From Ranitomeya imitator (Eukaryota), in assembly GCF_032444005.1 (NCBI RefSeq), contig NC_091288.1, positions 187,116,001-187,180,000 of the forward strand: 64,000 nt of DNA, read 5' to 3'. Every line of letters starts with the position of its first letter. Position 1 is the stretch's first letter. The position numbers and the translations under genes were made by a program. The notes beneath the pieces are model-generated. The model was not told the DNA's origin and ran no database searches. It was given only the letters and a program-made list of their open reading frames with translations. This document shows, piece after piece, positions 11,314 through 59,719 of the stretch.

Positions 11314-12981
11314 GGGAGGTCGGGAGGTGGCCCAGGACTTTAAAAAAAGCAAAAAAACTAACCTTGCTCAGGTGCCGCCTCCCCCTTCCCCCGCATCGTC
11401 CCCGCCCTATGCACGTGCCCTCAAGCGCCTAGTGGCAAATACGGTCCTGGTTATAACCATCGATACCTAAACCACTGCAATGCCCTGCACATGGGGTAAG
11501 CGACATCGCAAATCAGTAAAACTATATTACATTTCTGATTGGAGGTATTTGCTATTATTATTATTATTACTACTACACCCACTACATATTGGGATAGTAT
11601 CTTGGAGATGGGAATACCAATTTAAAGCTACTGGAGAAATCAATTAAAAAAAAAATATCTAAAGATACAGAAAGATGATAGATATCCTGCAGATATATTT
11701 CACACACCCCCAACATATTTTAAAATTGCAGTCTTTAGTGCTTTTTTATGTGGATTTTATTATACTGTTCGGTTTTTTAACCTTGTTTAACCTAATAAAT
11801 TAATGAAAAAACAACGTGGTCCCACCCTCATTGTATTAAACCAGCAAAGGTAAAGCAGACAGATGTGTCCTGATATTATCAGGCAGGGAAGGTCCCTGGT
11901 TATTGACCCATCTCTGCCTAAAAATACCAGCCCTCAGCCACCCCAGAAGTGGCACCTCGCATTAGATATGCCACTTCTGGAGCTTCGCCTTCACTTTTAC
12001 CTATTGCTTTTGTGCGTTGGCAATTGGATAATGGTAGTTGGAGTTGATGTCAGCTGTGAATTGCCAAAAACACAGCTGCCATCAAGTCCTGGTGTTAGTA
12101 ATGGAAAGGTGTCTATCAGACACCCCCTTACTAACCCAGTGCTAAAAAGTAAAAAATAAATAAAACAAACACTTTATAAAAAAAAAAAAAAAAAAAAAAA
12201 AAACAACACCCCAATACCTTCTTTGGTTCACCTATCTATATGTTTAAGACTTTTTTTTTCCTTGGTTGTCAGGAGGTTCTGGCAGTGCAAATTCCTGGCT
12301 AATTTAAGATAATCGGACGCCATACGGAGTGTCCGTGTGCTGTCCATTTTTTTTTGCACCCATTGACTTGCATTTGCGAGTCTCATTCGTTTTACGCAGC
12401 ATGATGTGATCCTTTTCCGTGCACTTAATACAGGTAAGAAAAAAAATTGCAGATCTGCACTGATGCATTTAATAATATTGGTGCGATTTTCTTTTATCAC
12501 ATCAGACTCAACGTATTTAGATGCAAGTGTGAGCAAACACAAAAACTGATGTAAAATACTGACCAAATACTGAACGTGGCCTAGTATAGACAAACTAATC
12601 ACACATCTCCTGGGTTCTCTAAAGCTGCCGTGGAGATCTATAAATTTGAAGGGCGTTTTCCCATAGTGATATATAGTTAGAATAGGACATTGCTTTCTGA
12701 TTGGTGGAGCTATTGTACCCCCTGAGAATGAAGGGGACCACAGTGCCGAGTCCCTTCCCTGTTTACCTTTAACAGTGGTGCTCCTGACCACCTGAAGAGC
12801 ACCCCCATCCATTGTGGTGACTGGCTGTACTGTAGCTCCTGGCTCCATGGGAGGATCGGTGGGAGTCCCCAGAAGGTGATAACATATCCCAGCACTCTTT
12901 CAGATATAATTAACCATTTAATGATTAACAATTCTCAATAAAGACAATTCACCCAATAATATTTCTATTTTGTTTCAATCA

Positions 12982-12987
12982 TTTATT
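12982..12987 (-). terminator. Candidate polyadenylation signal of TRIM copy A
   Basis: AATAAA on the minus strand about 190 nt past the stop; conserved in copy B (45956-45961). Confidence 0.55.
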
Positions 12988-13179
12988 CTGCATCCGATCA
13001 CAAGATCTCAAGAAGGCAAACAAAACCCAAAACACTACAACAGTAAAAATCCCGCCATGAAACCCCCCACATACATTATACAGTATTATTAGAAAACATT
13101 GCAGATAACACACTATATACAGATGCAGCATTGTAACAAGAAATAACGTAATTTTGATGCGACGCTATTGGCAGCGACC

Positions 13180-14727
13180 TCAGCTTATTTTAACAGAGGC
13201 GCCATCTTCCAAATACAAGATAACATGTAAGGGTTCGGTGAAGGAAGCAATGAAGGTGTATAAGTGTGTGACAGGGTCACTTAACTCATAGAAGGACAGA
13301 CGCCCGGCCTCATAGTCTAAGAAGACTCCCAGTTTTGGACTTTGTGGCTTTACACTGAGGCTTAATATGAATGAGTTGTGACTTACATCATAAGCTTCCT
13401 CAGACATCAACAAAAACCAAGATTTAGCATTAAGTCTAACATCAGAGTTATATCCTTCCCTTTCTACACTGGGATAACACATTCCGACTTCGCATTCTCC
13501 AATCTGGTTCCACTCTACCTCCCAGTAATGTCTTCCTGAGGAGAGCTCACATCTGCTTAAAACATGGGAGTAATCCATAAATCTTACTGACGATTCTGGT
13601 CTGTCCTGTTCTTCTGAATCTGTTGCCGTTTTCAGATCTTCTGATATCTTTATACAGTTATAAGCAGCGTCCACATCCAGCAAAATGTCTGGAACTTGGA
13701 TCCCGAGCTCTGAGGTTACATAGGTGACAATATCCCTCATGGATCGGTATAAGGTCAATGAGATCAGACCTTCGTCCAGATCCTCCCCACAATCCACATC
13801 TCCATCATCTCCCCAAGTGTCATCATCTTCATACCCTGTAATATCACTTTCTTGTAAGAGTCGTATTGGGTCAGTGACACGACACATCTCCTCCATATAA
13901 AACATTTTCTTGGACAGGTCTTGCTCCTGAACTTCCAACGTCTGGATCAGCTGAGATATCTTGGACACAGCCTTCTTCTCCTGCCTGCAGACCTCGCTCA
14001 GTGCTTTAGCTTCTGCAGCATCCAGTTGTTTCCTAATGTCCATAAATAACTTGACAATGTTCTCCTTCTTACCAGCGGCTTTCCGACGGATAGCCCACAT
14101 ATCATCCTGCAGATTTTGGACTCTGGTCTGAATTTTAGCTCTTTGTGGGTACAGATAATTCACATATTTCACCAGTTTCTCCTTTCTCTTCTCAGAAGCC
14201 TCAGCTAGAAGTTCCATCTTGTGACCCCAATGTTCACCAACCAAACAGCAAGACACACAGAGACAAGCCTCGTCCTCCAGGCAGTAATACTCCAGGAGCT
14301 TCTTGTGGAGAGAACATTTCTTGTTGCCAATTGAGAGAGTTGGTTCTATTAATATGTGATCCATCGTCTTATTGTGGACAGTCAGGTGTTTGCCACATAG
14401 AGAGTTCGCACACTGCAGACATGTTCTTACAGCCGGGGTGGGGGCATCGCAGTAAGCACAAAAAATTTGTGGGGGTTCCTCAGGCTGAGAAGATATGAAA
14501 TGCTCCACTATATTCGACAGCTTCCTGTTCTTCTCCAGGGTCGGACGCTCCGGATATTCTGCTCTGCACTCCGGACAGGAATATGCTCCAGTTACCTCCT
14601 GTATATCCAGGACTCTCACAACACAGACGTGGCAGAAGTTGTGTCCACAGCTCAGGTATACGGGATGTGTAAAGAGGCCCAGGCAAATGGGGCAGTTCAG
14701 CTCGTCCTTCAGCTCAGCAGACGCCAT
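13180..14727 (-). CDS. TRIM E3 ligase, 515 aa, single coding exon: RING, B-box1, B-box2, coiled coil, PRY/SPRY (amphibian TRIM39/TRIM25-like expansion type), copy A
   Basis: CPIC...CGHNFC...CPEC RING; CAYC...CLQC...CGKH...H; CSLH...C...C...H...H; SGRHYWEVEW and LGVFLDYEAGRLSFY SPRY motifs; uninterrupted ORF with ACAATGG start context. Confidence 0.95.
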   Translation of the reverse strand: MASAELKDELNCPICLGLFTHPVYLSCGHNFCHVCVVRVLDIQEVTGAYSCPECRAEYPERPTLEKNRKLSNIVEHFISSQPEEPPQIFCAYCDAPTPAVRTCLQCANSLCGKHLTVHNKTMDHILIEPTLSIGNKKCSLHKKLLEYYCLEDEACLCVSCCLVGEHWGHKMELLAEASEKRKEKLVKYVNYLYPQRAKIQTRVQNLQDDMWAIRRKAAGKKENIVKLFMDIRKQLDAAEAKALSEVCRQEKKAVSKISQLIQTLEVQEQDLSKKMFYMEEMCRVTDPIRLLQESDITGYEDDDTWGDDGDVDCGEDLDEGLISLTLYRSMRDIVTYVTSELGIQVPDILLDVDAAYNCIKISEDLKTATDSEEQDRPESSVRFMDYSHVLSRCELSSGRHYWEVEWNQIGECEVGMCYPSVEREGYNSDVRLNAKSWFLLMSEEAYDVSHNSFILSLSVKPQSPKLGVFLDYEAGRLSFYELSDPVTHLYTFIASFTEPLHVILYLEDGASVKIS

Positions 14728-15118
14728 TGTAGTGTGAAAGAGCCACGAAGCGGAAGCTAAAAAGATTCTTGATTTGAGAAGGCAGGAGAGTTAAGTCCTA
14801 AAGCTCTGCAGTGCCCAGGCTAGACTACTCCTCAGCTAAGGTTCTGTAGGGCCCAGACTACTCCTCACCTACGGTTCTGTATGGACCAGGACTATACTAC
14901 TTCTCACCTTCAGCTCTGCAGTGCCCAGACTAGACAACTTTTCACAGCACTCCTCGTGGTCCCAAGTCTCCAGCAAACACGTGCATTGCCGCTTCCGGTT
15001 AGGAACTTCCGCATTGGGCTATTAAAGCTCCGCCCCTTCCGCTGACGTCATCTCTTGCTGCCGCAACTGCTCAGCTGCAGAGTCGACGCGGTTATTTGTG
15101 CGCGTGCGTGCAGCCAGG
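14728..15118. promoter_or_regulatory. Putative bidirectional promoter between TRIM-A and THUMPD1-A (391 nt ATG to ATG)
   Basis: E-box cacgtg 14978, ETS cttccgg 14992 and acttccg 15005, reverse CCAAT attgg 15013, GC box 15030, CRE tgacgtca 15043-15050; CpG-rich. Confidence 0.7.
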
Positions 15119-15319
15119 ATGAGCTCCGAGGTCCAGAAGGGGAAAAAACGAGGAAAAGCGCAGTATGTGAGCAACGCCAAGCGGCACCGGGGAGGCCGGC
15201 AGCTGGAGGCGGGCATGCAGGGCATCCTCATCACCTGCAACATGAACGAGAGGAAGTGCGTGGGGGAAGCCTACAGTCTGCTCAACGAGTACGGAGACCT
15301 GCTGTACGGCGCGGAGAAG
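15119..15319 (+). CDS. THUMPD1: THUMPD1 copy A coding exon 1 (67 codons)
   Basis: MSSEVQ...GKAQY...GMQGILITCNMNERKCVGEAYSLLNEYGDLLYGAEK; GT donor at 15320, phase 0. Confidence 0.95.
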
Positions 15320-15377
15320 GTGGGGGACGCATGCGCCAAGTGTGTGTGTGTGCGCGGGCTTGTATCCCACGTGTGTT

Positions 15378-15702
15378 ACTACAACTCCCAACATGCCATT
15401 ACAGCTGCATAGTGTGGGCATGCTGGGAGTTGTAGTCCTGCGACAGCTGCATAGTGTGGGCATGCTGGGAGTTGTAGTCCTGCGACAGCTGCATAGTGTG
15501 GGCATGCTGGGAGTTGTAGTCCTGTGACAGCTGCATAGTGTGGGCATGCTGGGAGTTGTAGTCCTGCGACAGCTGCATAGTGTGGGCATGCTGGGAGTTG
15601 TAGTCCTGTGACAGCTGCATAGTGTGAGCATGCTGGGAGTTGTAGTCCTGTGACAGCTGCATAGTGTGGGCATGCTGGGAGTTGTAGTCCTGTGACAGCT
15701 GC
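15378..15702. repeat. 42-bp minisatellite in THUMPD1-A intron 1; each unit carries ACTACAACTCCCAGCATGC
   Basis: 7 minus-strand copies plus 1 inverted copy (actacaactcccaacatgcc) at 15378. Confidence 0.9.
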
Positions 15703-16032: not shown

Positions 16033-19000
16033 CCCCTTCATGACCCAGCCTATTTTGACCTTAAAGACCTTGCCGTTTTTTGCAATTCTGACCAGTGTCC
16101 CTTCATGAGGTAATAACTCAGGAACGCTTCAATGGATCCTAGCGGTTCTGAGATTGTTTTTTCGTGACATATTGGGCTTCATGTTAGTGGTAAATTTAGG
16201 TCAATAAATTCTGTGTTTATTTGTGATAAAAACGGAAATTTGGCGAAAATTTTGAAAATTTCGCAATTTTCACATTTTGAATTTTTATTCTGTTAAACCA
16301 GAGAGTTATGTGACACAAAATAGTTAATAAATAACATTTCCCACACGTCTACTTTACATCAGCACAATTTTGGAAACAAAATTTTTTTTTGCTAGGAAGT
16401 TATAAGGGTTAAAATTTGACCAGCGATTTCTCATTTTTACAACGAAATTTACAAAACCATTTTTTTTAGGGACCACCTCACATTTGAAGTCAGTTTGAGG
16501 GGTCTATATGGCTGAAAATACCCAAGTGACACCATTCTAAAAACTGCACCCCTCAAGGTGCACAAAACCACATTCAAGAAGTTTATTAACCCTTCAGGTG
16601 CTTCACAGCAGCAGAAGCAACATGGAAGGAAAAAATGAACATTTAACTTTTTAGTCACAAAAATGATTTTTCAGCAACAATTTTTTTATTTTCCCAATGG
16701 TAAAAGGAGAAACTGAACCACGTACGTTGTTGTCCAATTTGTCCTGAGTACGCTGATACCTCATATGTGGGGGTAAACCACTGTTTGGGCGCACGGCAGG
16801 GCTTGGAAGGGAAGGAGCGCCATTTGACTTTTTGAATGAAAAATTGGCTGCACTCTTTAGCGGACACCATGTCACATTTGGAGAGCCCCCGTGTGCCTAA
16901 AAATTGGAGCTCCCCCACAAGTGACCCCATTTTGGAAACTAGACGCCCCAAGGAACTTATCTAGATGCATAGTGAGCCCTTTAAACCCCCAGGTGCTTCA
17001 CAAATTGATCCGTAAAAATGAAAAAGTACTTTTTTTTCACAAAAAAATTCTTTTAGCCTCAATTTTTTCATTTTCACATGGACAACAGGATAAAATGGAT
17101 CCTAAAATTTGTTTGGCAATTTCTCCTGAGTACACCGATACTTCACATGTGGGGGTAAACCACTGTTTGGGCACATGGTAAGGCTCGGAAGGGAAGGAGC
17201 GCCATTTGACTTTTTGAATGAAAAATTATCTCCATCGATAGCGGACACCATGTCGCGTTTGGAGAGACCCTGTGTGCTTAAACATTGGAGCTCCCCCACA
17301 AGTGACCCCATTTTGGAAACTGGACCCCCCAAGGAACTTATCTAGATGCCTAGTGAGCACTTTAAACCCTCAGGTGCTTCACAAATTGATCCGTAAAAAT
17401 GAAAAAGTACTTTTTTTTCACAAAAAATTTATTTTCGCCTCAATTTTTTCATTTTCACATGGGCAATAGGATAAAATGGATCCTAAAATTTGTTGAGCAA
17501 TTTCTCCCGAGTACGCCGATACCTCATATGTGGGGGTAAACCACTGTTTGGGCACACGGCAGGGCTCGGAAGGGAAGGCGCGCCTTTTAACTTTTTGAAT
17601 GGAAAATTAGCTCCAATTGTTAGCGGACACCATGTCGCATTTGGAGAGCCCCTGTGTGCCTATGCAATGGAGCTCCCCCACAAGTGACCCCATTTTGGAA
17701 ACTAGACCCCCCAAGGAACTTATCTAGATGCATACTGAGCACTTTAAACCCCCAGGTGCTTCACAGAAGTTTATAATGCAGAGCCATGAAAATAAAAAAT
17801 AATTTTTCTTTTCTCAAAAATGATTTTTTAGCCTGGAATTTCCTATTTTGCCAATGGTAATAGGAGAAATTGGACCACAAATGTTGTTGTCCAGTTTGTC
17901 CTGAGTATGCAGATACCCCATATGTGGGGGTAAACCACTGTTTGGGCGCACGGCAGGGCTCAGAAGGGAAGGCACGCCATTTGGCTTTTTAAATGGAAAA
18001 TTATCTCCAATCATTAGCGGACACCATGTCGCGTTTGGAGAGCCCCTGTGTGCCTAAACATTGGAGATCCCCCACAAATTACCCCATTTTGGAAACTAGA
18101 CCCCCAAAGGAACTAATCTAGATGTGTAGTGAGCACTTTGAACCCTCAAGTGCTTCACAGAAGTTTATAACGCAGAGCCATGAAAATAAAAAAAAAAAAT
18201 TATTTTCTCAAAAATGAATTTTAGCCCGCAATTTTTAATTTTCCCAAGGGTAACAGGAGAAATTTGACCCCAAAAGTTGTTGTCCAGTTTCTCCTGAGTA
18301 CGCTGATACCCCATATGTGGGGGTAAACCACTGTTTAGGCACATGCTGGGGCTCGGAAGTGAAGTAGTGACGTTTTGAAATGCAGACTTTGATGGAATGC
18401 TCTGCGGGCGTCACGTTGCGTTTGCAGAGCCCCTGATGTGGCTAAACAGTAGAAACCCCCCACAAGTGACCCCATTTTGGAAACTAGACCCCGAAAGGAA
18501 CTTATCTAGATGTGAGGTGAGCACTTTGAACCCCCAAGTGCTTCACATAAGTTCATAACACAGAGCAGTGAAAATAATAAATACGTTTTCTTTCCTCAAA
18601 AATAATTTTTTAGCCCAGAATTTTTTATTTTCCCAAGGGTTACAGGAGAAATTGGACCACAAAAGTTGTTGTCCAGTTTCTCCTGAGTACGCTGATACCC
18701 CATGTGTGGGGGTAAACCACTGTTTGGGCACACGTGGGGGCTCAGAAGGGAAGTAGTGACTTTTGAAATGCAGACTTTGATGGAATGGTCTGCGGGCGTC
18801 ACATTGCGTTTGCAGAGCCCCTGGTGTGCCTAAACAGTAGAAACCCCCCACAAGTGACCCCATTTTGGAAACTAGACCCCCAAAGGAACTTATCTAGATG
18901 TGTGGTGAGCACTTTCAACCCCCAAGTGCTTTACAGAAGTTTATAACGCAGAGCCGTGAAAATAATAAATACGTTTTCTTTCCTCAAAAATAATTTTTTA

Positions 19001-21494
19001 GCCCAGAATTTTTTATTTTCCCAAGGGTTACAGGAGAAATTGGACCACAAAAGTTGTTGTCCAGTTTCTCCTGAGTACGCTGATGCCCCATGTGTGGGGG
19101 TAAACCACTGTTTGGGCACACGTGGGGGCTCAGAAGGGAAGTAGTGACTTTTGAAATGCAGACTTTGATGGAATGGTCTGCGGGCGTCACGTTGCGTTTG
19201 CAGAGCCCCTGGTGTGCCTAAACAGTAGAAACCCCCCACAAGTGACCCCATTTTGGAAACTAGACCCCGAAAGGAACTTATCTAGATATGTGGTGAGCAC
19301 TTTGAACCCCCAAGTGCTTCACAGACGTTTACAACGCAGAGCCGTGAAAATAAAAAATCATTTTTCTTTCCTCAAAAATGATGTTTTAGCAAGCAATTTT
19401 TTATTTTCTCAAGGGTAACAGGAGAAATTGGACCCCAGTAATTGTTGCGCAGTTTGTCCTGAGTATGCTGGTACCCCATATGTGGGGGTAAACCACTGTT
19501 TGGGCACACGTCGGGGTTCGGAAGTGAGGGAGCACCATTTGAATTTTTGAATACAAGATTGGCTGGAATCAATGGTGGCGCCATGTTGCGTTTGGAGACC
19601 CCCTGAAGTGCCTAAACAGTGGAAACCCCTCAATTCTACCTCCAACACACCCCTAACCCTTATCCCAACTGTAGCCGTAACCCTAATCACAACCCTAACC
19701 CCAACACACCCCTAACCACAACCCTAACCCCAACACACCCCTAACCCTAACCACAACCCTAATTCCAACCCAACTCTAAGGCTATGTGCCAACGTTGCGG
19801 ATTCGTATGAGATTTTTCAGCATCATTTTTGAAAAATCCGCGGGTAAAAGGCACTGCGTTTTACCTGTGGATTTACCGTGGATTTCCAGTGTTTTTTGTG
19901 CGGATTTCACCTGTGGATTCCTATTGAGGAACAGGTGTAAAACGCTGCGGAATCCGCACAAAGAATTGGCATGCTGCGGAAAATACAACGCAGCGTTCCC
20001 GCGCGGTATTTTCTGCACCATGGGCACAGCGGATTTGGTTTTCCATATGTTTACATGGTACTGTAAACCCGATGGAACACTGCTGCGGATCCGCAGCGGC
20101 CAATCCGCACCGTGTGCACATAGCCTAATTCTAAAGGTATGTGCACACGCTGCGGAAAACGCTGCGGATCCGCAGCAGTTTCCCATGAGTTTACAGTTCA
20201 ATGTGAACCTATGGGAACAAAAAAATCGCTGTACACATGCTGCGGAAAAACTGCACGGAAACGCAGCGGTTTACATTCCGCAGCATGTCACTTCTTTCTG
20301 CGGATTCCGCAGCGGTTTTAGAACTGCTCCAATAGAAAATCGCAGTTGTAAAACCGCAGTGAAATGCGCAGAAAAACCGCGGTAAATCCACGATAAATCG
20401 GCAGCGGTTTAGCACTGTGGATTTTTCAAATCCGCTGCGGAAAAATCCGCATAGGACCAGAATACGTGTGCACATACCGAAACCCTAACCCTAGCCCTAA
20501 CCCTACCCCTACCCCTACCCCTAACCCTACCCCTACCCCTAGTTCTTACCCCAACCTTAGTGAAAAAAAAAAAAATTCTTTATTTTTTTTATTGTCCCTA
20601 TCTATGGGGGTGACAAAGGGGGGGGTCATTTACTATTTTTTTTATTTTGATCACTGAGATAGGATATATCTCAGTGATCAAAATTCACTCTGGAACGAAT
20701 CTGCCGGCCGGCAGATTCGGCGGGCGCACTGCACATGCGCCCGCCATTTTGGAAGATGGCGGCGCCCAGGAAAGAAGACGGACGGACCTCGGGCGGCCAG
20801 GTAAGTATAAGGGGGGGGGAGATCAGGGCACGGGGGGGGCGTCGGAGCACGGGGGGGTGGATCGGATCATGGGGGGGGTGGATCGGAACACGGGAGGGAG
20901 GATTGGAGCACGGGGAAGGATTGGAGCACGGGGTGAGGGATCGCTGTGCGGGGGGGGGGTGGATCGGAGCACGGGGGGGGGGGTCGCTGTGTGCGGGGGG
21001 GGGATCGGAGTGCGGGAGGGTTTGATTGCAGCACAGGGGGTGTGATTGGTGCACGGGGAAGCGGACAGGAGGACGGGGGAGCGGAGCACAGGACGGAGGG
21101 GAGCGGACCACAGATCGGGGGGCTGGGGGGGCGATCGGAGGGGTGGGGTGGGTGCACATAAGTGTTTCCAGCCATGGCCGATGATATTGCAGCATCGGCC
21201 ATGGCTGGATTGTAATATTTCACCAGTTTTTTTAGGTGAAATATTACAAATCGCTCTGATTGGCAGTTTCACTTTCAACAGCCAATCAGAGCGATCGTAG
21301 CCACGAGGGGGTGAAGCCACCCCCCCTGGGCTAAACTACCACTCCCCCTGTCCCTGCAGATCGGGTGAAATGGGAGTTAACCCTTTCACCCGGCCTGCAG
21401 GGACGCGATCTTTCCATGACGCATATGCTGCGTCATGGGTCGGAATGGCACCGACTTTCATGACGCAGCGTATGCGTCAAAGGTCGGGAAGGGG
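16033..21494. mobile_element. piggyBac-like non-autonomous composite element (5.5 kb) in THUMPD1-A intron 1
   Basis: TTAA-CCCCTTC ... GAAGGGG-TTAA. Contains a 388-bp tandem array, degenerate CCCTAA runs, nested Harbinger-type MITEs (about 19780-20480) and G-rich repeats. Confidence 0.7.
16640..19660. repeat. About 8 tandem units of about 381-394 bp inside the piggyBac-like element
   Basis: Anchor gggtaaaccactgttt recurs near 16771, 17153, 17534, 17928, 18321, 18710, 19098 and 19486. Confidence 0.9.
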
Positions 21495-21497
21495 TTA

Positions 21498-49030: not shown

Positions 49031-49039
49031 ACTTCTCAC

Positions 49040-49189
49040 AGCACTCGTGGTCCCAAGTCTCCAGCAACACGTGCATTGCCGCTTCCGGTTAGGAACTTCC
49101 TCATTGTGCTTGTAAAGCCCCGCCCTTTCCGTTGACGTCATGTCTCGCTGCTGCAGAGACGGGCATTTGTGCGCAGGCGCGCAGCCAGG
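49040..49189. promoter_or_regulatory. Core promoter, copy B
   Basis: E-box 49068, ETS 49082, GC box 49118 and CRE 49133-49140 retained; attgg (CCAAT) changed to attgt. Confidence 0.65.
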
Positions 49190-49390
49190 ATGAGCTCTGA
49201 GGTCCAGAGGGGGAAAAAACGAGGAAAAGCGCAGTATGTGAGCAACGCCAAGCGGCACCGGGGAGGCCGGCAGCTGGAGGCGGGCATGGAGGGCATCCTC
49301 ATCACCTGCAACATGAACGAGAGGAAGTGCGTGGGGGAAGCCTACAGTCTGCTCAACGAGTACGGAGACCTGCTGTACGGCGCGGAGAAG
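49190..49390 (+). CDS. THUMPD1: THUMPD1 copy B coding exon 1
   Basis: K7R and Q34E versus copy A; donor gtgtgt. Confidence 0.93.
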
Positions 49391-49397
49391 GTGTGTC

Positions 49398-49605
49398 ACT
49401 ACAACTCCCAGCATGCCATGACAGCTGCAGATAGTGTGGGCATGCTGGGAGTTGTAGTCCTGTGACAGCTGCAGATAGTGTGGGCATGCTGGGAGTTGTA
49501 GTCCTGTGACAGCTGCAGATAGTGTGGGCATGCTGGGAGTTGTAGTCCTGTGACAGCTGCAGATAGTGTGGGCATGCTGGGAGTTGTAGCCCTGTGACAG
49601 CTGCA
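49398..49605. repeat. 44-bp minisatellite in THUMPD1-B intron 1 (ACTACAACTCCCAGCATGC units)
   Basis: 4 minus-strand units plus 1 inverted copy; the unit is 2 nt longer than in copy A. Confidence 0.9.
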
Positions 49606-50077
49606 CAGGTTCTGTTGCTGAGCTGCAGCCTTGGGACCTGTGCACACTGCAGGGATTTTCGGACCAATGTTTCTATTCACCTTCCACCTTCTTGGTTTTT
49701 CTCCATCTCTGTCTTCAAAGAGCCAGAAAAGGGTGGAGAAGAAGCTGGTAGGAAAGTGATATTGTAATGTTTGCCGCCCGCCATGATGCACCTGTCTCAT
49801 GTACTTGGTTTGCACAGTCATTCTCTGCTGACAGTCACATCATCAGAATATGACACCCTCTCTGCTCGGTTTGGGTCTGACTACCCGGACCCCAAAAAAT
49901 CATGAGAATTAAGGAAGAGTCAGACACCCGTGTAACTTGGTCGAGGATTTCAACGCAATACTCGGACTGTCCACCCCTGATGCCGGTGGCCTTAGCTCAT
50001 CTTCCATTTTCGGGGTGACAGGTTCCCTTTAATTAGCCATTTTCCATTCAAGTAAGTGTCTTCACTTTATGATCAGT

Positions 50078-50814
50078 TAAAAAATCAAGCTCATCCCGTG
50101 GAAAAAAATCAAGAAAAACAGTCTAGACAAGGATATAATCCTATAAATATATAAAAACATCCCCTGACGAAGGAGCAAGTGCGTCCGAAACGCGCGTCGG
50201 GGTGCCCCTGATTGTCCTGGCTACCCATAGTGGACTATATACATATTGGTCAGAGTAAGTGTCTTCCTACTTTTATCTACCTACCTTCCCTGCATCTGCA
50301 CTTTGCATATAGCACTTTAGTCTCTTTACAAGTCAGTGTAATTATATTTACATCTTAATATGTACATTTTGGCACTTTAGGCACATTGCACTTTTTTACA
50401 CATTTTTTTTTATTCAATCTAGAGTTTCTTTTTTGTCATATATATTTTGGTATTTGCAGGAGGTAGTAAGAGTGAGTGGTTTTTCATGGAGATCTAGACT
50501 ATAATAGCCAGCGATATTAGGGCACGTAGTAATAATTTGTTTACATATATATTGGTATATTCTTTCCTTATAATTTTATGTGTGGAATTTAATAAAAACT
50601 ATAATTTATATGATTATATCCTTGTCTAGACTGTTTTTCTTGATTTTTTTTTCCACGGGATGAGCTTGATTTTTTAACTCTTTGTAGTGTCCCACTACAC
50701 TATTAATACACTGGTTTTTCAGGGATCTCTTTTATCAAATGATTTTATATAAAAAATTGTTTTAATATATTAATATATATCTGTACCTGAATAATATTTG
50801 TGTATTTCTATTAT
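50078..50814 (+). mobile_element. Penelope-like insertion in THUMPD1-B intron 1, only in copy B
   Basis: 14-bp TSD actttatgatcagt (50064-50077, 50815-50828); inverted repeat of about 66 bp (50075-50140 vs 50612-50679); hammerhead motif; empty site at about 22960-22975 in copy A. Confidence 0.75.
50158..50204 (+). ncRNA. Minimal type I hammerhead ribozyme motif (Penelope-type)
   Basis: Stem I catccc/ggggtg (6 bp, one wobble); core CUGACGA plus an extra A; stem II GGA-GC-aagu-GC-g-UCC; GAAA; stem III AC-gcgc-GU; cleavage triplet GUC (C50198). Confidence 0.65.
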
Positions 50815-51055
50815 ACTTTATGATCAGTGTAGAGCCGCCCCCTCTATCCCTTCACGGCCCCCATCTGTGCAGAGAATAGCAGCCGGTCCCGTTCACTTGG
50901 AAAAGGCAGCGCTGCAGCTCTCTGTACGGTGTATGGAGTAGGTTTTCAGTGTGGATTTCTTGGCACAAGTCTGCAGCTCCGGGCCTGCGCCGATGTCGTG
51001 TATCCCCAAATTAAAAGTAAATGCTGTTGATGGATCTTTCTTTCTCCATTGACAG

Positions 51056-51242
51056 CTCTGTGATAAAGAAGACAGACTCTCGGGCAGCGAAGAGGAAGAA
51101 GATGATGACGACGACGACGTTGAAGCCGCTTTGAAGAAAGAAGTTGACCAGATTCGTACATCGACTGAAAAGAATTTACGCAGATTTCAGTCAGTAGAAA
51201 GTGGCGCTAATAATGTTGTTTTCATTAGGACCCTGAATGTAG
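51056..51242 (+). CDS. THUMPD1: THUMPD1 copy B coding exon 2
   Basis: AG/GT intact; G72E; acidic run E4D6 versus E5D4 (+1 codon, in frame). Confidence 0.93.
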
Positions 51243-53203
51243 GTAAGATCACGTCCTTCCCCCTCTACATGACTTGCTGGAGAAGTGGATTCGCCTGATG
51301 CAGATCTGTTAGCAGAAACTCCTGATCTCTTCCATACTTGTTAATGGGGTCGTATTCGAGGCAGGTGGATGGATTTCTACAAGCCGTGTTTAGAGCATTG
51401 AGAAATTGAAGGAAACTTCTGCAACAGATCTGTTTCCAGACGCTGCATCCACTGCAAAAATTAAAATCTGCCCCATATGCTGCATATTTACTGCAGGTTT
51501 TACCTCCTATATTGCAAAGGTCAGAATCCACAGTGTAAATTGACAGGTTGTGGATGTGACATCTAAAGTGTTACTCAATTCATATTTTTTTTCCTGCAGC
51601 TTGTGGTTGAGGTTTCGTAAGATCTGATCCACAACCCTGATTCTGTGCACGGCAGATTTTCCCATTTTTATCCTGCTAGTTATTCAACCCAGCTCTAATC
51701 GCTGCTGTTAACCATTTAGATGCTACTATCAGACAGCAGCAGTTAAATTAAGTGTTGCTGGTGCACACATTCACTAGCTCCCATTGGCCCATCCTGATGC
51801 ACCGATAGGCTATAATGGCAGCTGGAGGTCTGCTGAAGCCTCATCTGAGCCCGCGATTTACAATATATACTGCAATATTGTGGGATATGATATAAGCAGC
51901 TCAATGATCGCTGATTCAAGTTCCCTAAAGGGGAATGCAAAACATAAATATATAAAAATATCCCCTTTGTGGCATGTGCCGTACTAGTATGGCGCATGTC
52001 ACATCTCCCCCTTTGATGCGGGCTCCGGCGCTGAGCCCACATCAAAGCCAGGACATGTCAGCTGTTTTTGAACAGCTGACATGTGCCCACAATAGCGGGG
52101 GGTTGGAATTGCGATTCACCCGCCGCTATTAACTAGTTAAATGCCGCTGTCAAACTCTGACAGCGGCATTTAACTAGCGCTTCCGGCCGGAAATGCGTGC
52201 ATCGCTGACCCCGTCACGTGATTGGGGGTCAGCGATGCCTCTCCTGCAGACCTCTATGGTTGTTGATGCCGAATTGCTGTGAGTGCCACCCTGTGGTCAG
52301 CGCTCATAGCAATGTAGTAATTCAGCTACATAGGGGCGATCTGAGCATCGCTCCTATGTAGCAGAGCCGATCAGGCTATGCCATCTTCTAGCCTCCCGTG
52401 GAGGCTATTGAAGCATGGCAAAAGTAAAAAAAAAAAAAAAAAAAAAAAATTAAAATATAAATCGCCCCCCTTTCGCCCCATTAAAAATAAAACAATAAAA
52501 AATAAATCAATCCTACACATGTTTGATATCGCCGCGTTCAGAATCGCCCGATTAATCAATGAAAAAAAAGGATTAACCTGATCGCTAAACGACGTATTGA
52601 AAAAAAACATCAAAACGCCAGAATTATGCTCACATACAGTGCTAAATGACTTTCAAGGAGCATTTGATCATATCAATACTTAGTCTTTTTTTTTTTTTTG
52701 TTGCAGATTCCATCTGTAACTGGGGCTGGTATTAGTAGCCCCGGTTACATGGATGTATCAGTTTCCGAGCTGCATAGCGGAGCTTTTTCGGTTTCTGACT
52801 CTCCATACACCCAGTGATCACATGTTCACTGGGTCCGGAGGAGGACACACTGTTAGTACTTCCTAATCTGTACGTATAAGAGCTAATTCAGTGCAGTGTG
52901 TACATAGATCGAGTTAAATAAACCATGTTTATCGCTATGGGAAGTCTGGCTGTGTCTGACAGCTGCTTCCCACAGCGACATGATCGCATGCAAGATGGTT
53001 AGACTGCAATGATGTGCCAGAACGTCAGTGCCAGGACGAGTGTGGACTTCCCGGACATGCAACGTCTATAGGCCGCCCAGAACAAGTTATTCAACCCATA
53101 TGGTAAATGCTGTAAAGAGGAAGACACAAATAAAAATGGCAAGATTGTGTTTTTTCAGCCACAACACTGCCCTTCTATTTTTAATATTTGTGATTTCTTT
53201 CAG

Positions 53204-53452
53204 AGCCGGAGAAGTTGGTTCACCACATTTTAAAGGATCTGAACACTACGAAGAAGAAGAAGACACGGGTCATCCTTCGTATGCTACCCGTCACCGGTAC
53301 TTGTAAAGCTTTCCCCGAGGATCTCAAGAAATACACAGAGATGTTCTTCCATCCTTGGTTTAAAGCTCCCAACAAAGGAACATTTCAGATTGTGTATAAG
53401 GCAAGAAATAATAATCACATGAACAGAGAGGAGGTCATAAAGGACCTGGCAG
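53204..53452 (+). CDS. THUMPD1: THUMPD1 copy B coding exon 3
   Basis: AG/GT intact; KKYTEMFFHPW versus KKYAETFLHPW. Confidence 0.93.
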
Positions 53453-54812
53453 GTGAGAAAGCATGGCGGCATCCGTGTGTAGTAGCATGCCATCCTCACG
53501 TGTCATATGTGTTGTATTATAGCTGTGCAAATCCGTACAACCGACACTGTCCAGACACTTGAGAGCATGAACGAAGAATATGTAGGCTGCTATAATTTCC
53601 CCATTAGCAGGGAACATGAGAAGAGACAATATGAAAGAGTTGTTGTGGACAGGGACAAGTTGGCATTCAATCAAACAGGTAGGTGGCACGCCCAGTGAAT
53701 TAGCTGGAGACTGGTGCTAGTTCCTCTGAGTACTTGTAGACCAATAGTCGGAAGAGTGAAGGAACTGCACAACTAAAGGCACGTGGACATGCTCCAGATG
53801 GGATTTGCTGACAGAACTGGATATCCAATAGTCACACCTCAGTAAGTACAGCATTAGTTAACATTTCGGAAGAAAACTCCTTCATCAGACGTATAGGCTC
53901 ACTGCATATGGGTTAAGGCGATGAAGGGTGTGGGTGGGCTTCCCCCAAACAGGGACAACCACTATCAAACCATATCGAGTCACCCTGGATTCTCTTATCC
54001 TATATGTGGTGAACATAGCCTATACATCTGATAAAGGGTTTTTCACCCAAAACGTTACGTAATTGGATATCCAATCCAGTCAATAAATCCAATTTGAAGA
54101 ATCTTCACGTGACTTTTAGGTGTGAAGTTCCTTCACTCTGTCTACAAGTTGGCATTGCAGTCATTACATGGGATCCTATAGCAAAAAGATCACAAGGCCC
54201 CTTTATTTTGATAACCTTTCTTACCCCATTTTCAGCTCCTGGATCATTTTCCTTTTCCCCTACTTGCCATCACATTGCTTTGAGGTCCCTGCTGCATGCC
54301 ACAAGCTGTAGTGATTGCTGCACTCTTTATAAAATATTAATGGTGGTGTGAGATGCTGATGGGCACAGAGTTGCTTACTGCTTTACCCTCATTCATTTCC
54401 AATTTTACTGTCTCATTTGTACTTCTTGGGTGGGCCATCATTTTGTTAGTGGGGGTCAAACTGCCGGGACCTGCAATGATTCAGAGAGTGATTGAGCAGG
54501 GGTATTTCTCTGCGCTGTGGCGCTCTGTCACCTGCTCTGCTGGCAATTTCAGCACAGCTCAGGTGAAGTAAGGGGAACACTTTAGAAAGGACTCCCATAG
54601 TGTGAATCCAGAAAAAAAAAATCAAAGCTAAAAACCAAAGCCAGAATTGCTGTTTTTGATCATATCAGAAATATGTTCCAAAATTCTGAAAATTACGCAA
54701 AAATACCAAGCCCTAACAAAACTGTCTGTGTAAAACTTACGGCTCTCGGAACAGCCAAGTGTTGATTATTTTTATTTTTTTTTAAAGTGATTTTTCTTGT
54801 GTAAAAGTACTA

Positions 54813-56628
54813 CCGTATATACTCGAGTATAAGCCGACCCCCCTAATTTTGCCACAAAAAACTGGGAAAGCTTATTGACTCGAGTATAAGCCTAGGGTGG
54901 AAATGCAGCATTTACCGGTGAATTTCAAAAAATAAAAATAGATAATTCTTGCCCCATAGTTGTGCCATATAGTGCTCTGCATGTTCATTATTGCCCCATA
55001 GCTGTGCCCCACATAGTGCTCTGCACCATTCATGATTGTCCCTATAGCTGTGCCCCATACAGTGCTCTGCACCGTTCATTGTTCCCTATAGCTGTGCCCC
55101 ATACAGTGCTCTGCACCGTTCATTGTTCCCTATAGCTGTGCCCCATACAGTGCTCTGCACCGTTCATTGTTCCCTATAGCTGTGCCCCATACAGTGCTCT
55201 GCACCGTTCATTGTTCCCTATAGCTGTGCCCCATACAGTGCTCTGCACCTTTCATTGTTCCCTATAGCTGTGCCCCATACAGTGCTATGCACCGTTCATT
55301 GTTCCCTATAGCTGTGCCCCATACAGTGCTCTGCACCGTTCATTGTTCCCTATAGCTGTGCCCCATACAGTGCTCTGCACCGTTCATTGTTCCCTATAGC
55401 TGTGCCCCATACAGTGCTCTGCACCGTTCATTGTTCCCTATAGCTGTGCCCCATACAGTGCTCTGCACCGTTCATTGTTCCCTATAGCTGTGCCCCATAC
55501 AGTGCTCTGCTCCGTTCATTGTTCCCTATAGCTGTGCCCCATACAGTGCTCTGCACCGTTTATTGTTCCCTATAGCTGTGCCCCATACAGTGCTCTGCAC
55601 CGTTCATTGTTCCCTATAGCTGTGCCCCATACAGTGCTCTGCTCCGTTCATTGTTCCCTATAGCTGTGCCCCATACAGTGCTCTGCACCGTTTATTGTTC
55701 CCTATAGCTGTGCCCCATACAGTGCTCTGCACCGTTCATTGTTCCCTATAGCTGTGCCCCATATAGTGCTCTGCACCGTTCATTGTTCCCTATAGCTGTG
55801 CCCCATATAGTGCGCTGCACCGTTCATTATTTCCCTATAGCTCTGCCATATAGTGCTCTGCACCGTTCATTGTTCCCTATAGCTGTGCCCCATATAGTGC
55901 TCTGCACCATTCATTATTTCCCTATAGCTCTGCCATATAGTGCTCTGCACTGTTCATAGTTCCCTATATAAAGCTGTGCCATTGCCGCTGCTGCTGCAGT
56001 AAAAAAAAAAAAAAAAAGAAAAAAACACATACTCGCCTCTCTTGCTTGCAGCTCCCGGCGTCCGGTCCCGGCGCCTCCATCTTCCCGGCGTCTCTGCACT
56101 GACTGATCAGGCAGAGGGCGCCGCGCACACTATATGCGTCATCGCGCCCTCTGACCTGAACAGTCAGAGCGCAGACGCCGGGAAGATGGAGGCGCCGGGA
56201 AGATGGAGCGGCGCCCGGCGTCTGGAACACGGACAGGTGACTATTACATACTTACCTGGTCCCGACGTCCGGCTCCCTCTGCCTGTCACAGCTGGTCTTC
56301 GGTGCCGCAGCTTCTTTCTCTAATCAGCGGTCACCGGCAGCGCTGATTAGAAAAATGAATAGGCGGCTCCACCCCTATGGGAGGTGGAGCCGCCTATTCA
56401 TTTCTGTAATGAGCGGTCCCACGTGACTGCTGAAGAGGGGAAGAAGCAGCACCGAAGACCGTGGGATTGGCAGGGACAGCTCCAGGATCGCTGGGACTAG
56501 GTAAGTATGCCTCAGCGCCCTCACCCGCCGACCCTGCCACCCACCTTGACTCTAGTATAAGCCGAGAGGGGCACTTTCAGCCCAAAAATTTGGGCTGAAA
56601 ATCTCGGCCTATACTCGAGTATATACGG
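54813..56628. mobile_element. Tc1/mariner-superfamily (Tc2-like) non-autonomous element, only in copy B intron 3
   Basis: Perfect 20-bp TIR ccgtatatactcgagtata; TA TSD (54811-54812, 56629-56630); empty site agtactaaatgg at about 33046-33057 in copy A. Confidence 0.85.
54990..55965. repeat. 44-bp minisatellite, about 22 units, inside the Tc2-like element
   Basis: Unit gctgtgccccatacagtgctctgcaccgttcattgttccctata. Confidence 0.95.
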
Positions 56629-56988
56629 TAAATGGTAAAAAGAACTGTCTTAAGTATCGCCATAATTGTTGTATTAACTTGTACTATAAAACTATCATTT
56701 ATCTGACACTGTGAATGCCATTAAAATTAATTCTAATGAACACTCAGGAAGAGGATTCATATTTAACTTCCCAGGGGAGCATTGCATGGCCTATAAGTCT
56801 CCATACACCAACCTGCCAATCTCCAAAAAGAGAAATTTTAACACTTTTGACTCCTTACAAAATAAACAATCGCTAAAGTTGCTCTTTATGGTCACTTTTT
56901 AATTCATTATGTATGAACAGAAAAGTCAAATGTTCCTGTTTTAGTTAGATTTTTCTTCTGGATTGACTGACACGGTTTTATGTTTCAG

Positions 56989-57233
56989 GACTAGTTGGGA
57001 ACCTGAATCCGGAGAATAAGGTGGACCTGACCAATCCTGAGTTCACCATTGTAGTGGAGATTATCAGGAACGTCTGCTGCCTGAGCGTGGTGAAGGACTA
57101 TACCTTGTTAAGGAAATATAACCTACAGGAGGTGGTAAAGAGCGCCAAAGAGGAGAAACCACAGGAACCAGCTGGGGATGCCGGAAAGGAGAAAACAGAA
57201 GAGCAAAGCAACGAAGACCCTGCAGTGGTCTGA
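56989..57233 (+). CDS. THUMPD1: THUMPD1 copy B coding exon 4 (protein total 293 aa)
   Basis: Identical to copy A except ttc to tta (TLFRKY to TLLRKY). Confidence 0.93.
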
Positions 57234-57770
57234 GACGCCTAAAAACCATGTACATGTAGAGCCCGGAAGAAATCAAGTCAGCAAACATCCAGGCACAAAA
57301 AATCCCCTGTATGTTGGTTTAGTAACATAAACCCCTTTAGCTGCTGTTATTTTCCCCTTTGTACATTTTTGCCCCCTCCTTAGAGCAGCGCTTGAAATTA
57401 GTGATTTTCTGATTTTTAGTAAGGTTATGGTGCACATGGACAATTTGGTCATTGTGTTGCTTTCCAGTTATGTTTACTATGACATAAAAACTGGGTTCCT
57501 CTGGGAAAATAAAATTTTATTTTTTGATCATTTTGGGTAGGTTTTAATTCAACAATGTGAGTGATGGATCTGTAAGCCAGAAACCATATACTGCATCAGA
57601 AGACGTAGTCAACAGAGCATGTCCATTACCATCTGATGGGGGAGAGGGGGAAATGTTGTGCTTTATCTCCAAATTAAAAACCTAAGGGAAAAGTGTCAGG
57701 AATGTCATGTGTCAACCCCCAACCTCACGGACACACCATTGACGTCTCATACAGTATCTAGTGCCATTTA

Positions 57771-58782
57771 GGCCGGTTTCACACGTCAGTGGCTCCGGTA
57801 CATGAGGTGACAGTTTCTTCACGTACTGGAGCCACTGACACAAGTAGACACATTAAAATCAATGCATCTGTGCAGATGTCATTGATTTTTTGCGGACCGT
57901 GTCTCCGTGTGCCAAACACAGAGACATGTCAGTGTTCGTGGGAGCGCACGTATTACATGGACCCATTAAAGTCAATGGGTCCGTGTAAAACACGTACCGC
58001 ACACGGACATTGTCCGTGTGCAGTCCGTGTGCCATGCAGGAGACAGCACTACATTAAGCGCTGTCCCCCCCACTGGTGCTGAAGCCGCGATTCATATCTT
58101 CCCTGCAGCAGCGTTTGCTGTAGAGAAGATATGAATAATCGTGTTTAAAATGAAGATCTATGTGCCCCCCGCCCTCCCACACCCTGTGCGCCCCCCGCTG
58201 TTCTTAAAATACTCACCTGGCTCGCTCCCTCGCCGGCGCTGTTTCCTCTCCTGGCCGCATCTTCTACTGTGTGAGCTGTCACGTGGGGCCGCCGATTACA
58301 GTCATGAATATGCGGCTCCACCTCCCATAGGGGTGGAGCCGTATATTCATTTCTGTAAATGAGCGGCCCCACATAACCGCATACAGTAGAAGGTGCGGCC
58401 AGGACAGGAAGCAGCGACAGCCAACGAGGGAGCCGGGTGAGTATTTTAAGAACAGCAGGGGGGTGGGAGGGGGGGGGTTGCACATAGATCTTTATTTTAA
58501 ACACGATTATTCATATCTTCTCTACAGCAAACGCTGCTGCAGGGAAGATATGAATGGGGTTTCAGCACCAGAGGCAGGGGACAGCGCTAAACTTTAGCGC
58601 TGTCTCCTGCACGGTGCGTGTGGTACCCAGTGGGCACACGGGCGGCACACGTGTGCCGCACGTGTGCCACACTGATGTGCCACAGAAACGCAACGGCACA
58701 TGGACACGGATAATTCTGGTACCGATTTTTTTTTTTTTTTTTTTTTTCGGTACCGGAATTATCTGGACGTGTGGGACTGCCC
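57771..58782. mobile_element. PIF/Harbinger-type element, only in copy B
   Basis: ggccggtttcacacgtc...gacgtgtgggactgccc; TTA TSD; empty site gccatttaatgattgg at about 34199-34216. Confidence 0.75.
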
Positions 58783-59719
58783 TTAATGATTGGTTTGGGG
58801 TTCTTCCTGTAGTTCTTGGGACCTGTCTGCTCTCCTAATTTGCCTGTTTTACTAAACCCTTGTTTCTCTGATCGCCCATGACGGCACCACGGAGAGGGGA
58901 TCTGCCCACCAAGGACAGGAAACCTACGGATAAAAAGGCGGTACCACTCTCCTGCATCAGTTGGTTTCCTGTCCTTGATGGGAGACCTACGGACTTACCA
59001 GTTCGACGTTGGAATTCCGGGGCCAACCAGTCCGACTCAGGCAGCTGGGGTCCCTCTGCCTCGGCTAGGGTGGTGACCCGAAGCGCCACCGCTGGGAGCC
59101 AGTGGGCCTACAGGGTGTGCGGGGGAGGTGACAAGGAGTTTGCGGTCACCTCCCCAGGTAAGATGCAGCAGCGGCAACATCCAGGGGGGTCCCTCTGTGG
59201 TTGCGGGAGGTGCAGCGCGACCCTCCCTAAAACAAGCATCAGTCTGCACGCTGCACTGCCATCGGGCGTGCAGAGTAACGCGCTAAAGGGACTGCATAGG
59301 ACCGGGGGTGCCGGTCAGCAGCGCCATATCTGCTTTCCGGGCGCCATCTTGAAAGTTCGGCGCATGCCCGGGATCCAGGCTGGTCTAGCGAGGTTGAAGG
59401 GAGCTTCCGCACAGGCGCCGGCGGATTGCCGCTCGGGCGCTTGGTGCGGTCTGCGCAGGCGTCGGCGGAGTTGCCGCTCATGCGCAGGCGCCGGTTACGG
59501 CTTGATTGCGCAGGCGCCGGCGTTCTGCGCTCCTCGCCGTCGGCAGGCGCTACTGCGCAAGCGCACCAAAAAAAAAAAAAGCGGCGGGAGGGTTTAAATA
59601 GGAGAATCCACATCCTCCCAGTGGCTCTGCAATAATAGGCAGGAGCCTCAAGAGCTAATAGTCGCCGCAGCGCCAGCTCAGCTCGAGTATCAAGGCAGCA
59701 TCCGCAGACCAGCAGCAGT

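Follow-up and report, generated by a model that had tools for sequence, protein, structure and literature searches.

The question raised by this locus in Ranitomeya imitator is whether a TRIM gene and THUMPD1, which lie head-to-head and occur twice, form a new kind of genetic system or an ordinary duplication. We analyzed a 64,000-nt window of the R. imitator assembly GCA_032444005.1 (the whole stretch of DNA under study; all coordinates are window positions). The results pointed to a real and recent tandem segmental duplication of about 22 kb in R. imitator, whose unit was already a head-to-head pair of TRIM and THUMPD1, a reading to which we assign a probability of about 0.8. It appears to be a young segmental duplication of the usual sort rather than a novel type of genetic system.

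Unit A (12393-34308, 21.9 kb) and unit B (43385-58891, 15.5 kb) aligned as colinear blocks in direct repeat, running from 12393/43385 to 34308/58891 at 80-96% identity, and the introns and flanks had been copied too. A spacer of 9.1 kb, mostly repeats, lay between the units (34309-43384). Each unit contained one intronless TRIM gene on the minus strand and one four-exon THUMPD1 gene on the plus strand, arranged head-to-head. The original prediction had described a tandem duplication of this pair in direct orientation, and the colinear blocks matched its coordinates. The introns of the two units differed at 108 of 2443 positions by substitution (4.4%), with unit-specific insertions in addition. 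An ACSM-like (AMP-binding) gene adjoined TRIM-A, with no such neighbor at TRIM-B; because this gene lies beside TRIM-A only, copy A occupies the ancestral place. In human, ACSM3 adjoins THUMPD1.

THUMPD1-A consisted of exon 1 (15119-15319; 67 codons, phase 0 donor), exon 2 (23212-23395), exon 3 (29809-30057) and exon 4 (33421-33665, including the stop codon), all on the plus strand. THUMPD1-B consisted, on the same strand, of exon 1 (49190-49390), exon 2 (51056-51242; acidic run one codon longer), exon 3 (53204-53452; KKYTEMFF where A has KKYAETFL) and exon 4 (56989-57233, stop codon included). All introns were GT-AG with phases 0/1/1 in A and B alike, in spite of gene spans of 18,547 nt and 8,044 nt, which bore out the claim that splice sites and phases had been kept despite very unlike introns. 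The translations of the exons, exon 2 of A and exon 1 of B among them, occurred in order within the RefSeq proteins P0393 (292 aa) and P0395 (293 aa), so that the splice models equal the annotated proteins. Domain searches were run exon by exon, and database protein entries were used for full-length comparison. In both copies, Pfam PF02926 matched exon 3 and exon 4, which carry the first and second halves of the THUMP domain, respectively, and the human THUMPD1 THUMP domain (PDB 2DIR) matched exon 3 of A (E = 2e-24), exon 3 of B (2e-22) and exon 4 of B (3e-11). The best matches to both copies were all named THUMPD1, RefSeq names the copies 'THUMPD1-like', and in the protein tree they clustered with other dendrobatid THUMPD1 proteins (support 97/94). 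Judged by protein sequence and by the ACSM-like gene beside copy A, both copies are orthologs of vertebrate THUMPD1. In human and yeast, THUMPD1/Tan1 serves NAT10/Kre33 as adaptor in the ac4C modification of tRNA (Sharma et al. 2015, PMC4344512). The frog proteins resemble it in the THUMP domain across exons 3-4 and in their 76-89% identity to vertebrate THUMPD1, whereas the frog has two tandem paralogs (most listed frogs have one entry), and copy B carries five private substitutions.

TRIM-A (13180-14727, minus strand, 515 aa, P0122) and TRIM-B (46144-47697, minus strand, 517 aa, P0121) were intronless coding sequences including the stop codon. Their proteins were 96% identical, and each was the same as a member of an R. 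imitator protein cluster. Both contained an N-terminal C3HC4 RING (PF13445, PF15227 and PF00097 over cut-offs), followed by a B-box (PF00643, 38.8 bits), a coiled coil (TRIM_CC, PF25600, 38.2-38.9 bits) and a C-terminal SPRY domain (46-50 bits; cut-off 26.3), with PRY slightly below its cut-off (23.8-24.8 bits; cut-off 27.5). Both TRIM frames are open, as had been claimed, and the proteins are predicted class IV-type TRIM E3 ligases (RBCC + PRY/SPRY). The two copies differed by 13 synonymous and 24 non-synonymous changes (p = 0.064, small counts), and 5 of 21 substitutions fell inside 19 residues of the SPRY domain, a marginal hot spot (permutation p = 0.058). Site patterns were mosaic across five Ranitomeya TRIMs, which would fit gene conversion or concerted evolution among paralogs. 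The gene belongs to a huge, fast-turning-over TRIM family in frogs ('TRIM25/39-like'), in agreement with the birth-and-death expansion that had been ascribed to amphibian SPRY-TRIMs. In vertebrates, B30.2 (PRY-SPRY) TRIMs have expanded in tandem in particular lineages, for example as finTRIM/btr in fish and as the TRIM5 cluster in mammals (Boudinot et al. 2011, PMC3137616). The frog genes share with them the RING/B-box/coiled-coil/PRY-SPRY order, the tandem copies, the SPRY-biased differences and the gene-conversion-like mosaics, but the frog array is intronless, has two or three members, and its copies in the window each stand with an unrelated housekeeping gene.

The intergenic region of copy A (14728-15118) was covered end to end by RNA contigs and contained motifs for ETS (14992), CCAAT (15013), GC box (15030) and CRE (15043) near the THUMPD1 start, a predicted set of the housekeeping type. 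It also held a 35-bp piece found only in A (14729-14763) and about four units of a 38-bp repeat (14797-14945). In copy B, this repeat formed a minisatellite of 35 units (47732-49039). The start codons were 391 nt apart in A and 1,492 nt apart in B; the spacing of 391 nt given by the original prediction therefore held for copy A only, because the minisatellite had grown in copy B. The promoter side of copy B had also lost the CCAAT box and carried deletions of 14 and 5 nt in the 5' UTR next to the minisatellite of about 1.3 kb. A motif scan found no ISRE core in the intergenic region of either copy. In 500-nt windows starting at 14750-15000, copy A had a GC content of 0.55-0.59 and a CpG observed/expected ratio of 0.68-0.79, and in windows starting at 48750-49000, copy B had 0.53-0.58 and 0.52-0.62; the shared region is GC-rich and CpG-rich, borderline in B. 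Divergent genes count as a bidirectional-promoter pair when less than about 1 kb separates their start sites, and copy A lies within this spacing, measured here between start codons and not transcription start sites. Copy A resembles vertebrate head-to-head bidirectional pairs in its opposite strands, short GC-rich gap, motif set and RNA across the gap, whereas copy B differs by its wider, minisatellite-bearing gap. In the literature, no paper was found that gives THUMPD1 a bidirectional promoter, and among the matches listed for duplication of this gene in frogs, none mentioned THUMPD1.

The introns of the two THUMPD1 copies carried different repeats. A 388-bp satellite of 7.4 units (16658-19524) was present in intron 1 of A only, and a partial, inverted copy of it lay in the spacer (39673-40860). 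Rfam gave zero matches across the whole window, so the satellite has no match among the described ribozymes and RNA families. Intron 2 of A contained a reverse-transcriptase ORF from a retroelement fragment (27491-28828, minus strand) with no counterpart in B. A Tc1/mariner-type element with transposase domains (30600-32234, plus strand) occupied intron 3 of A only; its inverted arms lay at 30599-30808 and 32022-32235, and its flanks directly adjoin in B (54001-54002). Intron 3 of B alone contained a 44-bp minisatellite of 22.8 units (54965-55968).

The introns served as the neutral yardstick for THUMPD1, since the counts for dN/dS were too few alone (6 synonymous and 8 non-synonymous differences; p = 0.090). 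The 8 non-synonymous differences in 685 sites were significantly fewer than expected from the 4.4% intron divergence (p = 1.7e-5), and also fewer than the 15.1 predicted were one of the copies unconstrained (P = 0.035). These comparisons point to purifying selection on both THUMPD1 copies, with B still under some constraint. A possible but doubtful alternative is that THUMPD1-B is effectively dead, either silent or non-functional, and that its open frame reflects youth only, since a frame of 880 nt may survive about 4.4% neutral divergence by chance. Five of the seven polarized residues were derived in B and two in A, the branch to B was longer in the protein tree (0.025, against 0.0034 for A), and B carried a T-to-M change at a position where all frogs and human have the same residue. 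These changes, together with the altered promoter side of copy B, would fit decay; against it, the non-synonymous count stays below the one-copy-free expectation, every splice site is intact, and two of the three B states in exon 3 are harmless elsewhere (Thr is the bird residue; Phe is the ancestral frog residue, which birds keep too). The same B residues also appear in a second assembly.

Expression was read from Logan contigs, which are paralog mosaics produced by k-mer threading, so that copy assignment is rough. RNA contigs in runs X1 and X2 spliced position 15319 to exon 2 with an A-type letter, B-only TRIM letters occurred in X1 and X2, and A-type TRIM letters occurred in X7. THUMPD1-B mRNA was not seen among the contigs of runs X1 and X2, where the A type was present; this would favor a silent B, but such contigs cannot prove silence. 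THUMPD1-A is the expressed, slower-evolving copy, and both TRIM types are transcribed.

Across frogs, proteins and annotated neighbors within 10 kb (4.1 kb in Bufo) were compared, a design that could overlook unannotated pseudogene partners. A TRIM was annotated head-to-head with a THUMP gene in R. variabilis, Dendrobates tinctorius and Anomaloglossus (232 nt), and THUMPD1 had one entry in nearly all other anurans listed, in line with the claim that it is normally single-copy. No TRIM was annotated upstream of THUMPD1 in Hyla and Phyllobates (10 kb) or Bufo (4.1 kb). The arrangement is therefore older than the duplication, and annotation evidence would place the capture of the THUMPD1 promoter region by a TRIM on the dendrobatoid stem. 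With housekeeping motifs near the THUMPD1 start, no ISRE core and a pair that predates the duplication, the TRIM looks like a newcomer at THUMPD1's promoter, a reading that draws on the absence of an annotated TRIM in two or three outgroup species. The original prediction suggested that THUMPD1 had been carried along because it shares the TRIM promoter; a passenger role in a segmental event is reasonable, but the promoter seems to be THUMPD1's own. Regarding timing, imiA, imiB and the R. variabilis protein were not separated in the protein tree. A derived Gly common to imiA and R. variabilis, plus four SPRY sites, would suggest a duplication older than the split of R. imitator and R. variabilis, while fourteen species-specific TRIM sites would suggest either a younger duplication or concerted evolution.

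The same comparison bears on two readings that give the pair a function. The first, which we consider improbable, holds that poison frogs have kept an immune-type TRIM on the THUMPD1 promoter for tens of Myr and that the second THUMPD1 or a TRIM-THUMPD1 coupling has a new role in the lineage; its support is that THUMPD1 was duplicated on at least two separate occasions, in R. imitator and in D. tinctorius, with one conserved and one fast copy each. If true, there would be a second THUMPD1 role or a coupling beyond hitch-hiking. The second, quite improbable in our judgment, is that TRIM and THUMPD1 act jointly, for example as immune TRIM plus tRNA acetylation, and that the cassette was amplified as a selected unit. 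The head-to-head layout lasting from Anomaloglossus to Ranitomeya, the intact and constrained THUMPD1 frames and the separate duplication in D. tinctorius would agree with this. However, the second THUMPD1 of D. tinctorius (P0397) had no annotated TRIM partner, nor did THUMPD1 of Phyllobates, while a third R. imitator TRIM (imiC) and the R. variabilis TRIM P0001 had no THUMP neighbor, indicating that duplication need not involve both genes at once. In addition, the TRIM changes quickly, with 77% identity from Ranitomeya to Dendrobates against 94% for THUMPD1, no paper was found linking the two, and a bidirectional pair would be expected to persist even if its genes had no joint function. Nothing indicates a functional coupling of TRIM and THUMPD1 apart from promoter sharing. 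The suggestion of an undescribed locus-level system finds no support, on these grounds: the pair already existed before the duplication, its partners are separable, and all four genes (two TRIM, two THUMPD1) are already in the RefSeq annotation.

That A and B are alleles of one locus placed in tandem by the assembler is highly improbable: an earlier R. imitator assembly did contain 23% duplicated BUSCO at low coverage, partly blamed by its authors on uncollapsed heterozygosity (10.1101/706671), but here the window contains no N and no gap between the units, the introns differ by 4.4% with different transposons and kilobase-scale insertions, the 9.1-kb spacer intervenes, an A-like (P0394) and a B-like (P0408) THUMPD1 lie together on one 1.54-Mb contig of the older, separate assembly GCA_958301615.1, and relatives, too, have at least two TRIM copies or an additional THUMPD1. 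The B-type start of THUMPD1 intron 1 was also present in a DNA run (X10), independently of assembly. The A/B duplication is genuine, a tandem segmental event at the DNA level in which both genes were copied together.

The present locus probably arose in three steps. In a dendrobatoid ancestor, an intronless 'TRIM25/39-like' TRIM would have come to sit on the opposite strand some hundreds of bases before THUMPD1, at the GC-rich housekeeping promoter of that gene. In the Ranitomeya lineage, one DNA-level event would then have copied the TRIM, the promoter and THUMPD1 with its introns, along with the initial few hundred bases of the ACSM-like gene model, THUMPD1 being a passenger. The copies would subsequently have built up a neutral-site divergence of about 4.4%, acquired unlike transposons and minisatellites, and swapped patches by gene conversion. 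Copy B is now constrained in part, bearing most of the derived changes, with its promoter split by the 1.3-kb minisatellite.

For a locus that had been flagged as a possible new 'system', these results give a clean negative: it is a real, ordinary, young segmental duplication. What it offers is a second copy, rarely seen, of a tRNA-modification adaptor that is single-copy elsewhere, found separately in two poison-frog genera with a slow and a fast copy in each, together with TRIM paralogs that show apparent concerted evolution. The locus may be of use to work on what becomes of gene duplicates and on the birth-and-death of TRIM genes in amphibians.

Self-comparison of the window revealed colinear direct blocks, 80-96% identical, that start at 12393/43385 and end at 34308/58891, bearing out the original prediction that a TRIM-THUMPD1 unit occurs here twice in direct orientation. 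Unit A (21.9 kb) and unit B (15.5 kb) were separated by a repeat-rich spacer of 9.1 kb, and the greater length of unit A is due to its introns, which contain a Tc1/mariner element (30600-32234), a reverse-transcriptase fragment (27491-28828) and, in intron 1, a 388-bp satellite (16658-19524, 7.4 units). An inverted partial array of the satellite lay in the spacer (39673-40860), and the satellite matched no Rfam family, hence no described ribozyme or RNA family. A 44-bp minisatellite (54965-55968) was found in unit B only. The TRIM reading frames on the reverse strand (TRIM-A, 13180-14727, 515 aa; TRIM-B, 46144-47697, 517 aa) were both open, as predicted, and their proteins, imiA and imiB, were 96% identical; both matched the RING, B-box, TRIM coiled-coil and SPRY domain models above cut-off, with the PRY score slightly under it. 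The four forward-strand exons of THUMPD1-A (15119-15319, 23212-23395, 29809-30057, 33421-33665) and THUMPD1-B (49190-49390, 51056-51242, 53204-53452, 56989-57233) lay upstream of TRIM-A and TRIM-B, respectively, and all three introns of each copy kept the expected GT-AG sites and phases (0, 1, 1). The predicted distance of 391 nt from ATG to ATG was correct for copy A and not for copy B, where the start codons lie 1,492 nt apart because a 38-bp minisatellite (35 units, 47732-49039) intervenes.

The THUMPD1 exons were queried one by one, and full-length proteins were obtained via database identifiers. The THUMP domain halves are split between exons 3 and 4, which matched the human THUMPD1 THUMP-domain structure (PDB 2DIR; E = 2e-24 for copy A exon 3), and the exon translations were found in order within the proteins P0393 (THUMPD1-A, 292 aa) and P0395 (THUMPD1-B, 293 aa). 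Both imiA and imiB have exact counterparts in the protein collection, placed on a 226.8-Mb R. imitator chromosome of GCA_032444005.1. A THUMP gene is annotated there head to head with each TRIM (292 and 293 aa), under the RefSeq name 'THUMP domain-containing protein 1-like' (XP_069590317.1 and XP_069590316.1). THUMPD1 is the NAT10 adaptor for tRNA ac4C (PMC4344512). Anurans have a very large TRIM family, named TRIM25/39-like, of which the window TRIM is a member; B30.2 expansions of TRIM genes have been described (PMC3137616).

The duplication at this locus is genuine: a head-to-head gene pair that already existed was copied in tandem in a lineage-specific event. That A and B are instead haplotypes of one locus, as the caution about uncollapsed heterozygosity in an earlier R. 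imitator draft (10.1101/706671) might suggest, has a chance of a few per cent, since the window has zero gaps, the introns differ at 108/2443 positions (4.4%) in addition to the unit-specific insertions, and the B-type intron 1 start was found in the public DNA run X10. Moreover, the comparison with a second assembly favoured true duplication: in the older, separate GCA_958301615.1, a single 1.54-Mb contig encodes both P0394, which is A-like, and P0408, which is B-like and has every B-diagnostic residue. The first R. imitator genome paper carries a retraction mark in its journal version (PMC8457190), and the preprint statement on duplicated BUSCO genes is used as context only.

Four copies of a ~650-bp element (75-86% identical) were located at 8293-9022, 21497-22192, 38829-39525 and 61365-62025, including one in THUMPD1-A intron 1, one in the spacer and one past unit B; their mutual matches occur in both orientations, which means that an inverted repeat lies within the element. 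These copies are possible substrates for unequal exchange. At 60146-63834 on the forward strand, a 343-aa ORF with a LAP2alpha match (PF11560, E = 1e-14) lies immediately 5' of reverse-transcriptase and RNase H ORFs, and the segment resembles a retroelement with a LAP2alpha-like domain in its first ORF. A dense 30-32-bp tandem repeat array at 4097-5089 has long ORFs on both strands (e.g. 4113-5276, 387 aa) with no Pfam match and is most likely a non-coding minisatellite.

Annotated genes up to 10 kb away were compared in other frogs. The TRIM was head to head with THUMPD1 in D. tinctorius (P0022, 77% identical) and Anomaloglossus baeobatrachus (single-exon, 523 aa, 232 nt apart), and R. variabilis P0123 had the same arrangement with a THUMP gene of 291 aa; R. 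variabilis P0001 had no head-to-head THUMP gene. No TRIM beside THUMPD1 was annotated within 10 kb in Hyla sarda and Phyllobates terribilis, or within the 4.1 kb of available sequence in Bufo gargarizans. These results indicate that the pairing is older than the duplication, and, judged from annotated neighbours, it looks dendrobatoid-specific. We found no evidence for the proposed undescribed locus-level system, as the pairing predates the duplication and the genes were already annotated, though the searched literature does not discuss the window TRIM and THUMPD1 genes. An AMP-binding (ACSM-like) gene follows TRIM-A only, not TRIM-B, which places copy A at the ancestral position; in human, ACSM3 presumably adjoins THUMPD1. 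The CDS of the annotated 614-aa ACSM-like model begins within the duplicated segment, 332 nt past the stop codon of TRIM-A; the first ORF there (12228-12848, reverse strand) bears no acyl-CoA-synthetase resemblance, the unit B counterpart (45436-45613, 45805 onward) is disrupted, and the first exon of the model may be spurious. ETS, CCAAT, GC-box and CRE matches lie 75-130 nt 5' of the THUMPD1 start in the intergenic gap, where no ISRE core was found; the copy B gap has lost CCAAT and kept the remaining motifs (ETS, GC-box, CRE). The suggestion that THUMPD1 was carried along through a TRIM promoter is right in that THUMPD1 is a passenger of the duplication, but the later arrival, we infer, was the TRIM, which came to a promoter of housekeeping type.

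THUMPD1 is normally single-copy, as stated in the original prediction, with one entry in most listed anurans; D. tinctorius has two (P0396 and P0397, consecutive accessions on one scaffold). P0397 (GCA_039654945.1) has a gene span of 38.9 kb, ~16 private substitutions and no TRIM partner among its annotated neighbours. In the protein tree, the D. tinctorius copies were sisters (98/93) with branches of 0.010 and 0.063, that of P0397 being six times its sister's, which suggests relaxed or changed constraint. Ranitomeya THUMPD1 formed a clade with 97/92 support, internally unresolved (branches: THUMPD1-B 0.025, THUMPD1-A 0.0034). The tree thus indicates either independent THUMPD1 duplications in the two genera or a single one followed by homogenisation; in both Ranitomeya and Dendrobates, one copy is slow and one fast.

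Between the two units, TRIM showed dS 0.040 and dN 0.020 (omega 0.50; 13 synonymous and 24 non-synonymous changes), and THUMPD1 showed dS 0.033 and dN 0.012 (omega 0.36; 6 and 8 changes). With the introns (divergence 108/2443) as the neutral yardstick, non-synonymous change was below intron level in both THUMPD1 (P = 1.7e-5) and TRIM (P = 1.5e-4). Under a model with one copy free since duplication, ~15.1 non-synonymous changes were expected in THUMPD1 and 8 observed (P = 0.035); for TRIM the model was not rejected (26.9 expected, 24 observed). Polarity, set against 14 other species, assigned K7R, Q34E, A->T and T->M (KKYAETF) and F->L (DYTLF) to THUMPD1-B, and E->G (common to R. variabilis) and F->L (TFFHPW) to THUMPD1-A. 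Among the three exon-3 states of copy B, Thr is normal in birds, and Phe is ancestral in frogs and kept by birds too. Derived residues thus appear to lie largely, not entirely, in copy B, and the asymmetry between THUMPD1 copies is mild.

Part of 12843-15400 was present in 20 public runs, nine of which contained half or more of the sampled words; the runs were examined as contigs. In X1 and X2, a contig extended from exon 1 over 15319 into letters equal to the exon 2 start, with the copy A letter, showing that these runs are RNA and that THUMPD1-A is spliced as modelled. Contigs covered the 391-nt gap of copy A in full, which fits overlapping divergent transcripts. Copy-B-only TRIM letters (14113, 14063, 14445, 14501 and others) occurred in X1 and X2, and copy A letters in run X7. 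At the rough resolution that contigs give, transcription was found for THUMPD1-A and both TRIM types; no B-type THUMPD1 contig was found in the RNA runs, which in contigs is not proof of silence. The contigs mixed features of A, B and the third R. imitator paralog imiC (P0124), including a 9-nt deletion otherwise seen only in imiC, and may reflect k-mer threading or differently converted copies in other animals.

The 90% cluster of the window TRIM has five members (imiA, imiB, imiC, and R. variabilis P0123 and P0001). Among them, 14 sites separate the species, and at four SPRY sites (441, 451, 454, 504) imiA agrees with P0123, the R. variabilis copy linked to THUMPD1, and differs from imiB, imiC and P0001; five sites unite imiA with imiC and three imiA with imiB. 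Such a mosaic is consistent with gene conversion among TRIM paralogs, and the duplication may be older or younger than the speciation. Intron divergence between the units was likewise uneven (1.3% to 9.5%). Directly 5' of the TRIM-A start codon, a 35-bp piece (14729-14763), missing in copy B and in contigs of X2, X7 and X10, represents either an indel polymorphism or a difference between paralogs in the 5' leader of the TRIM. For imiC, no annotated neighbour was found within 10 kb. An X10 DNA contig with the TRIM 5' end in common departed from the window at 14734 into other letters with an ISRE-like GAAACGAAAGCGAAA, and probably represents sequence upstream of a different TRIM paralog, perhaps imiC. 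The promoter of that paralog would then be of interferon type, which those of copies A and B are not.
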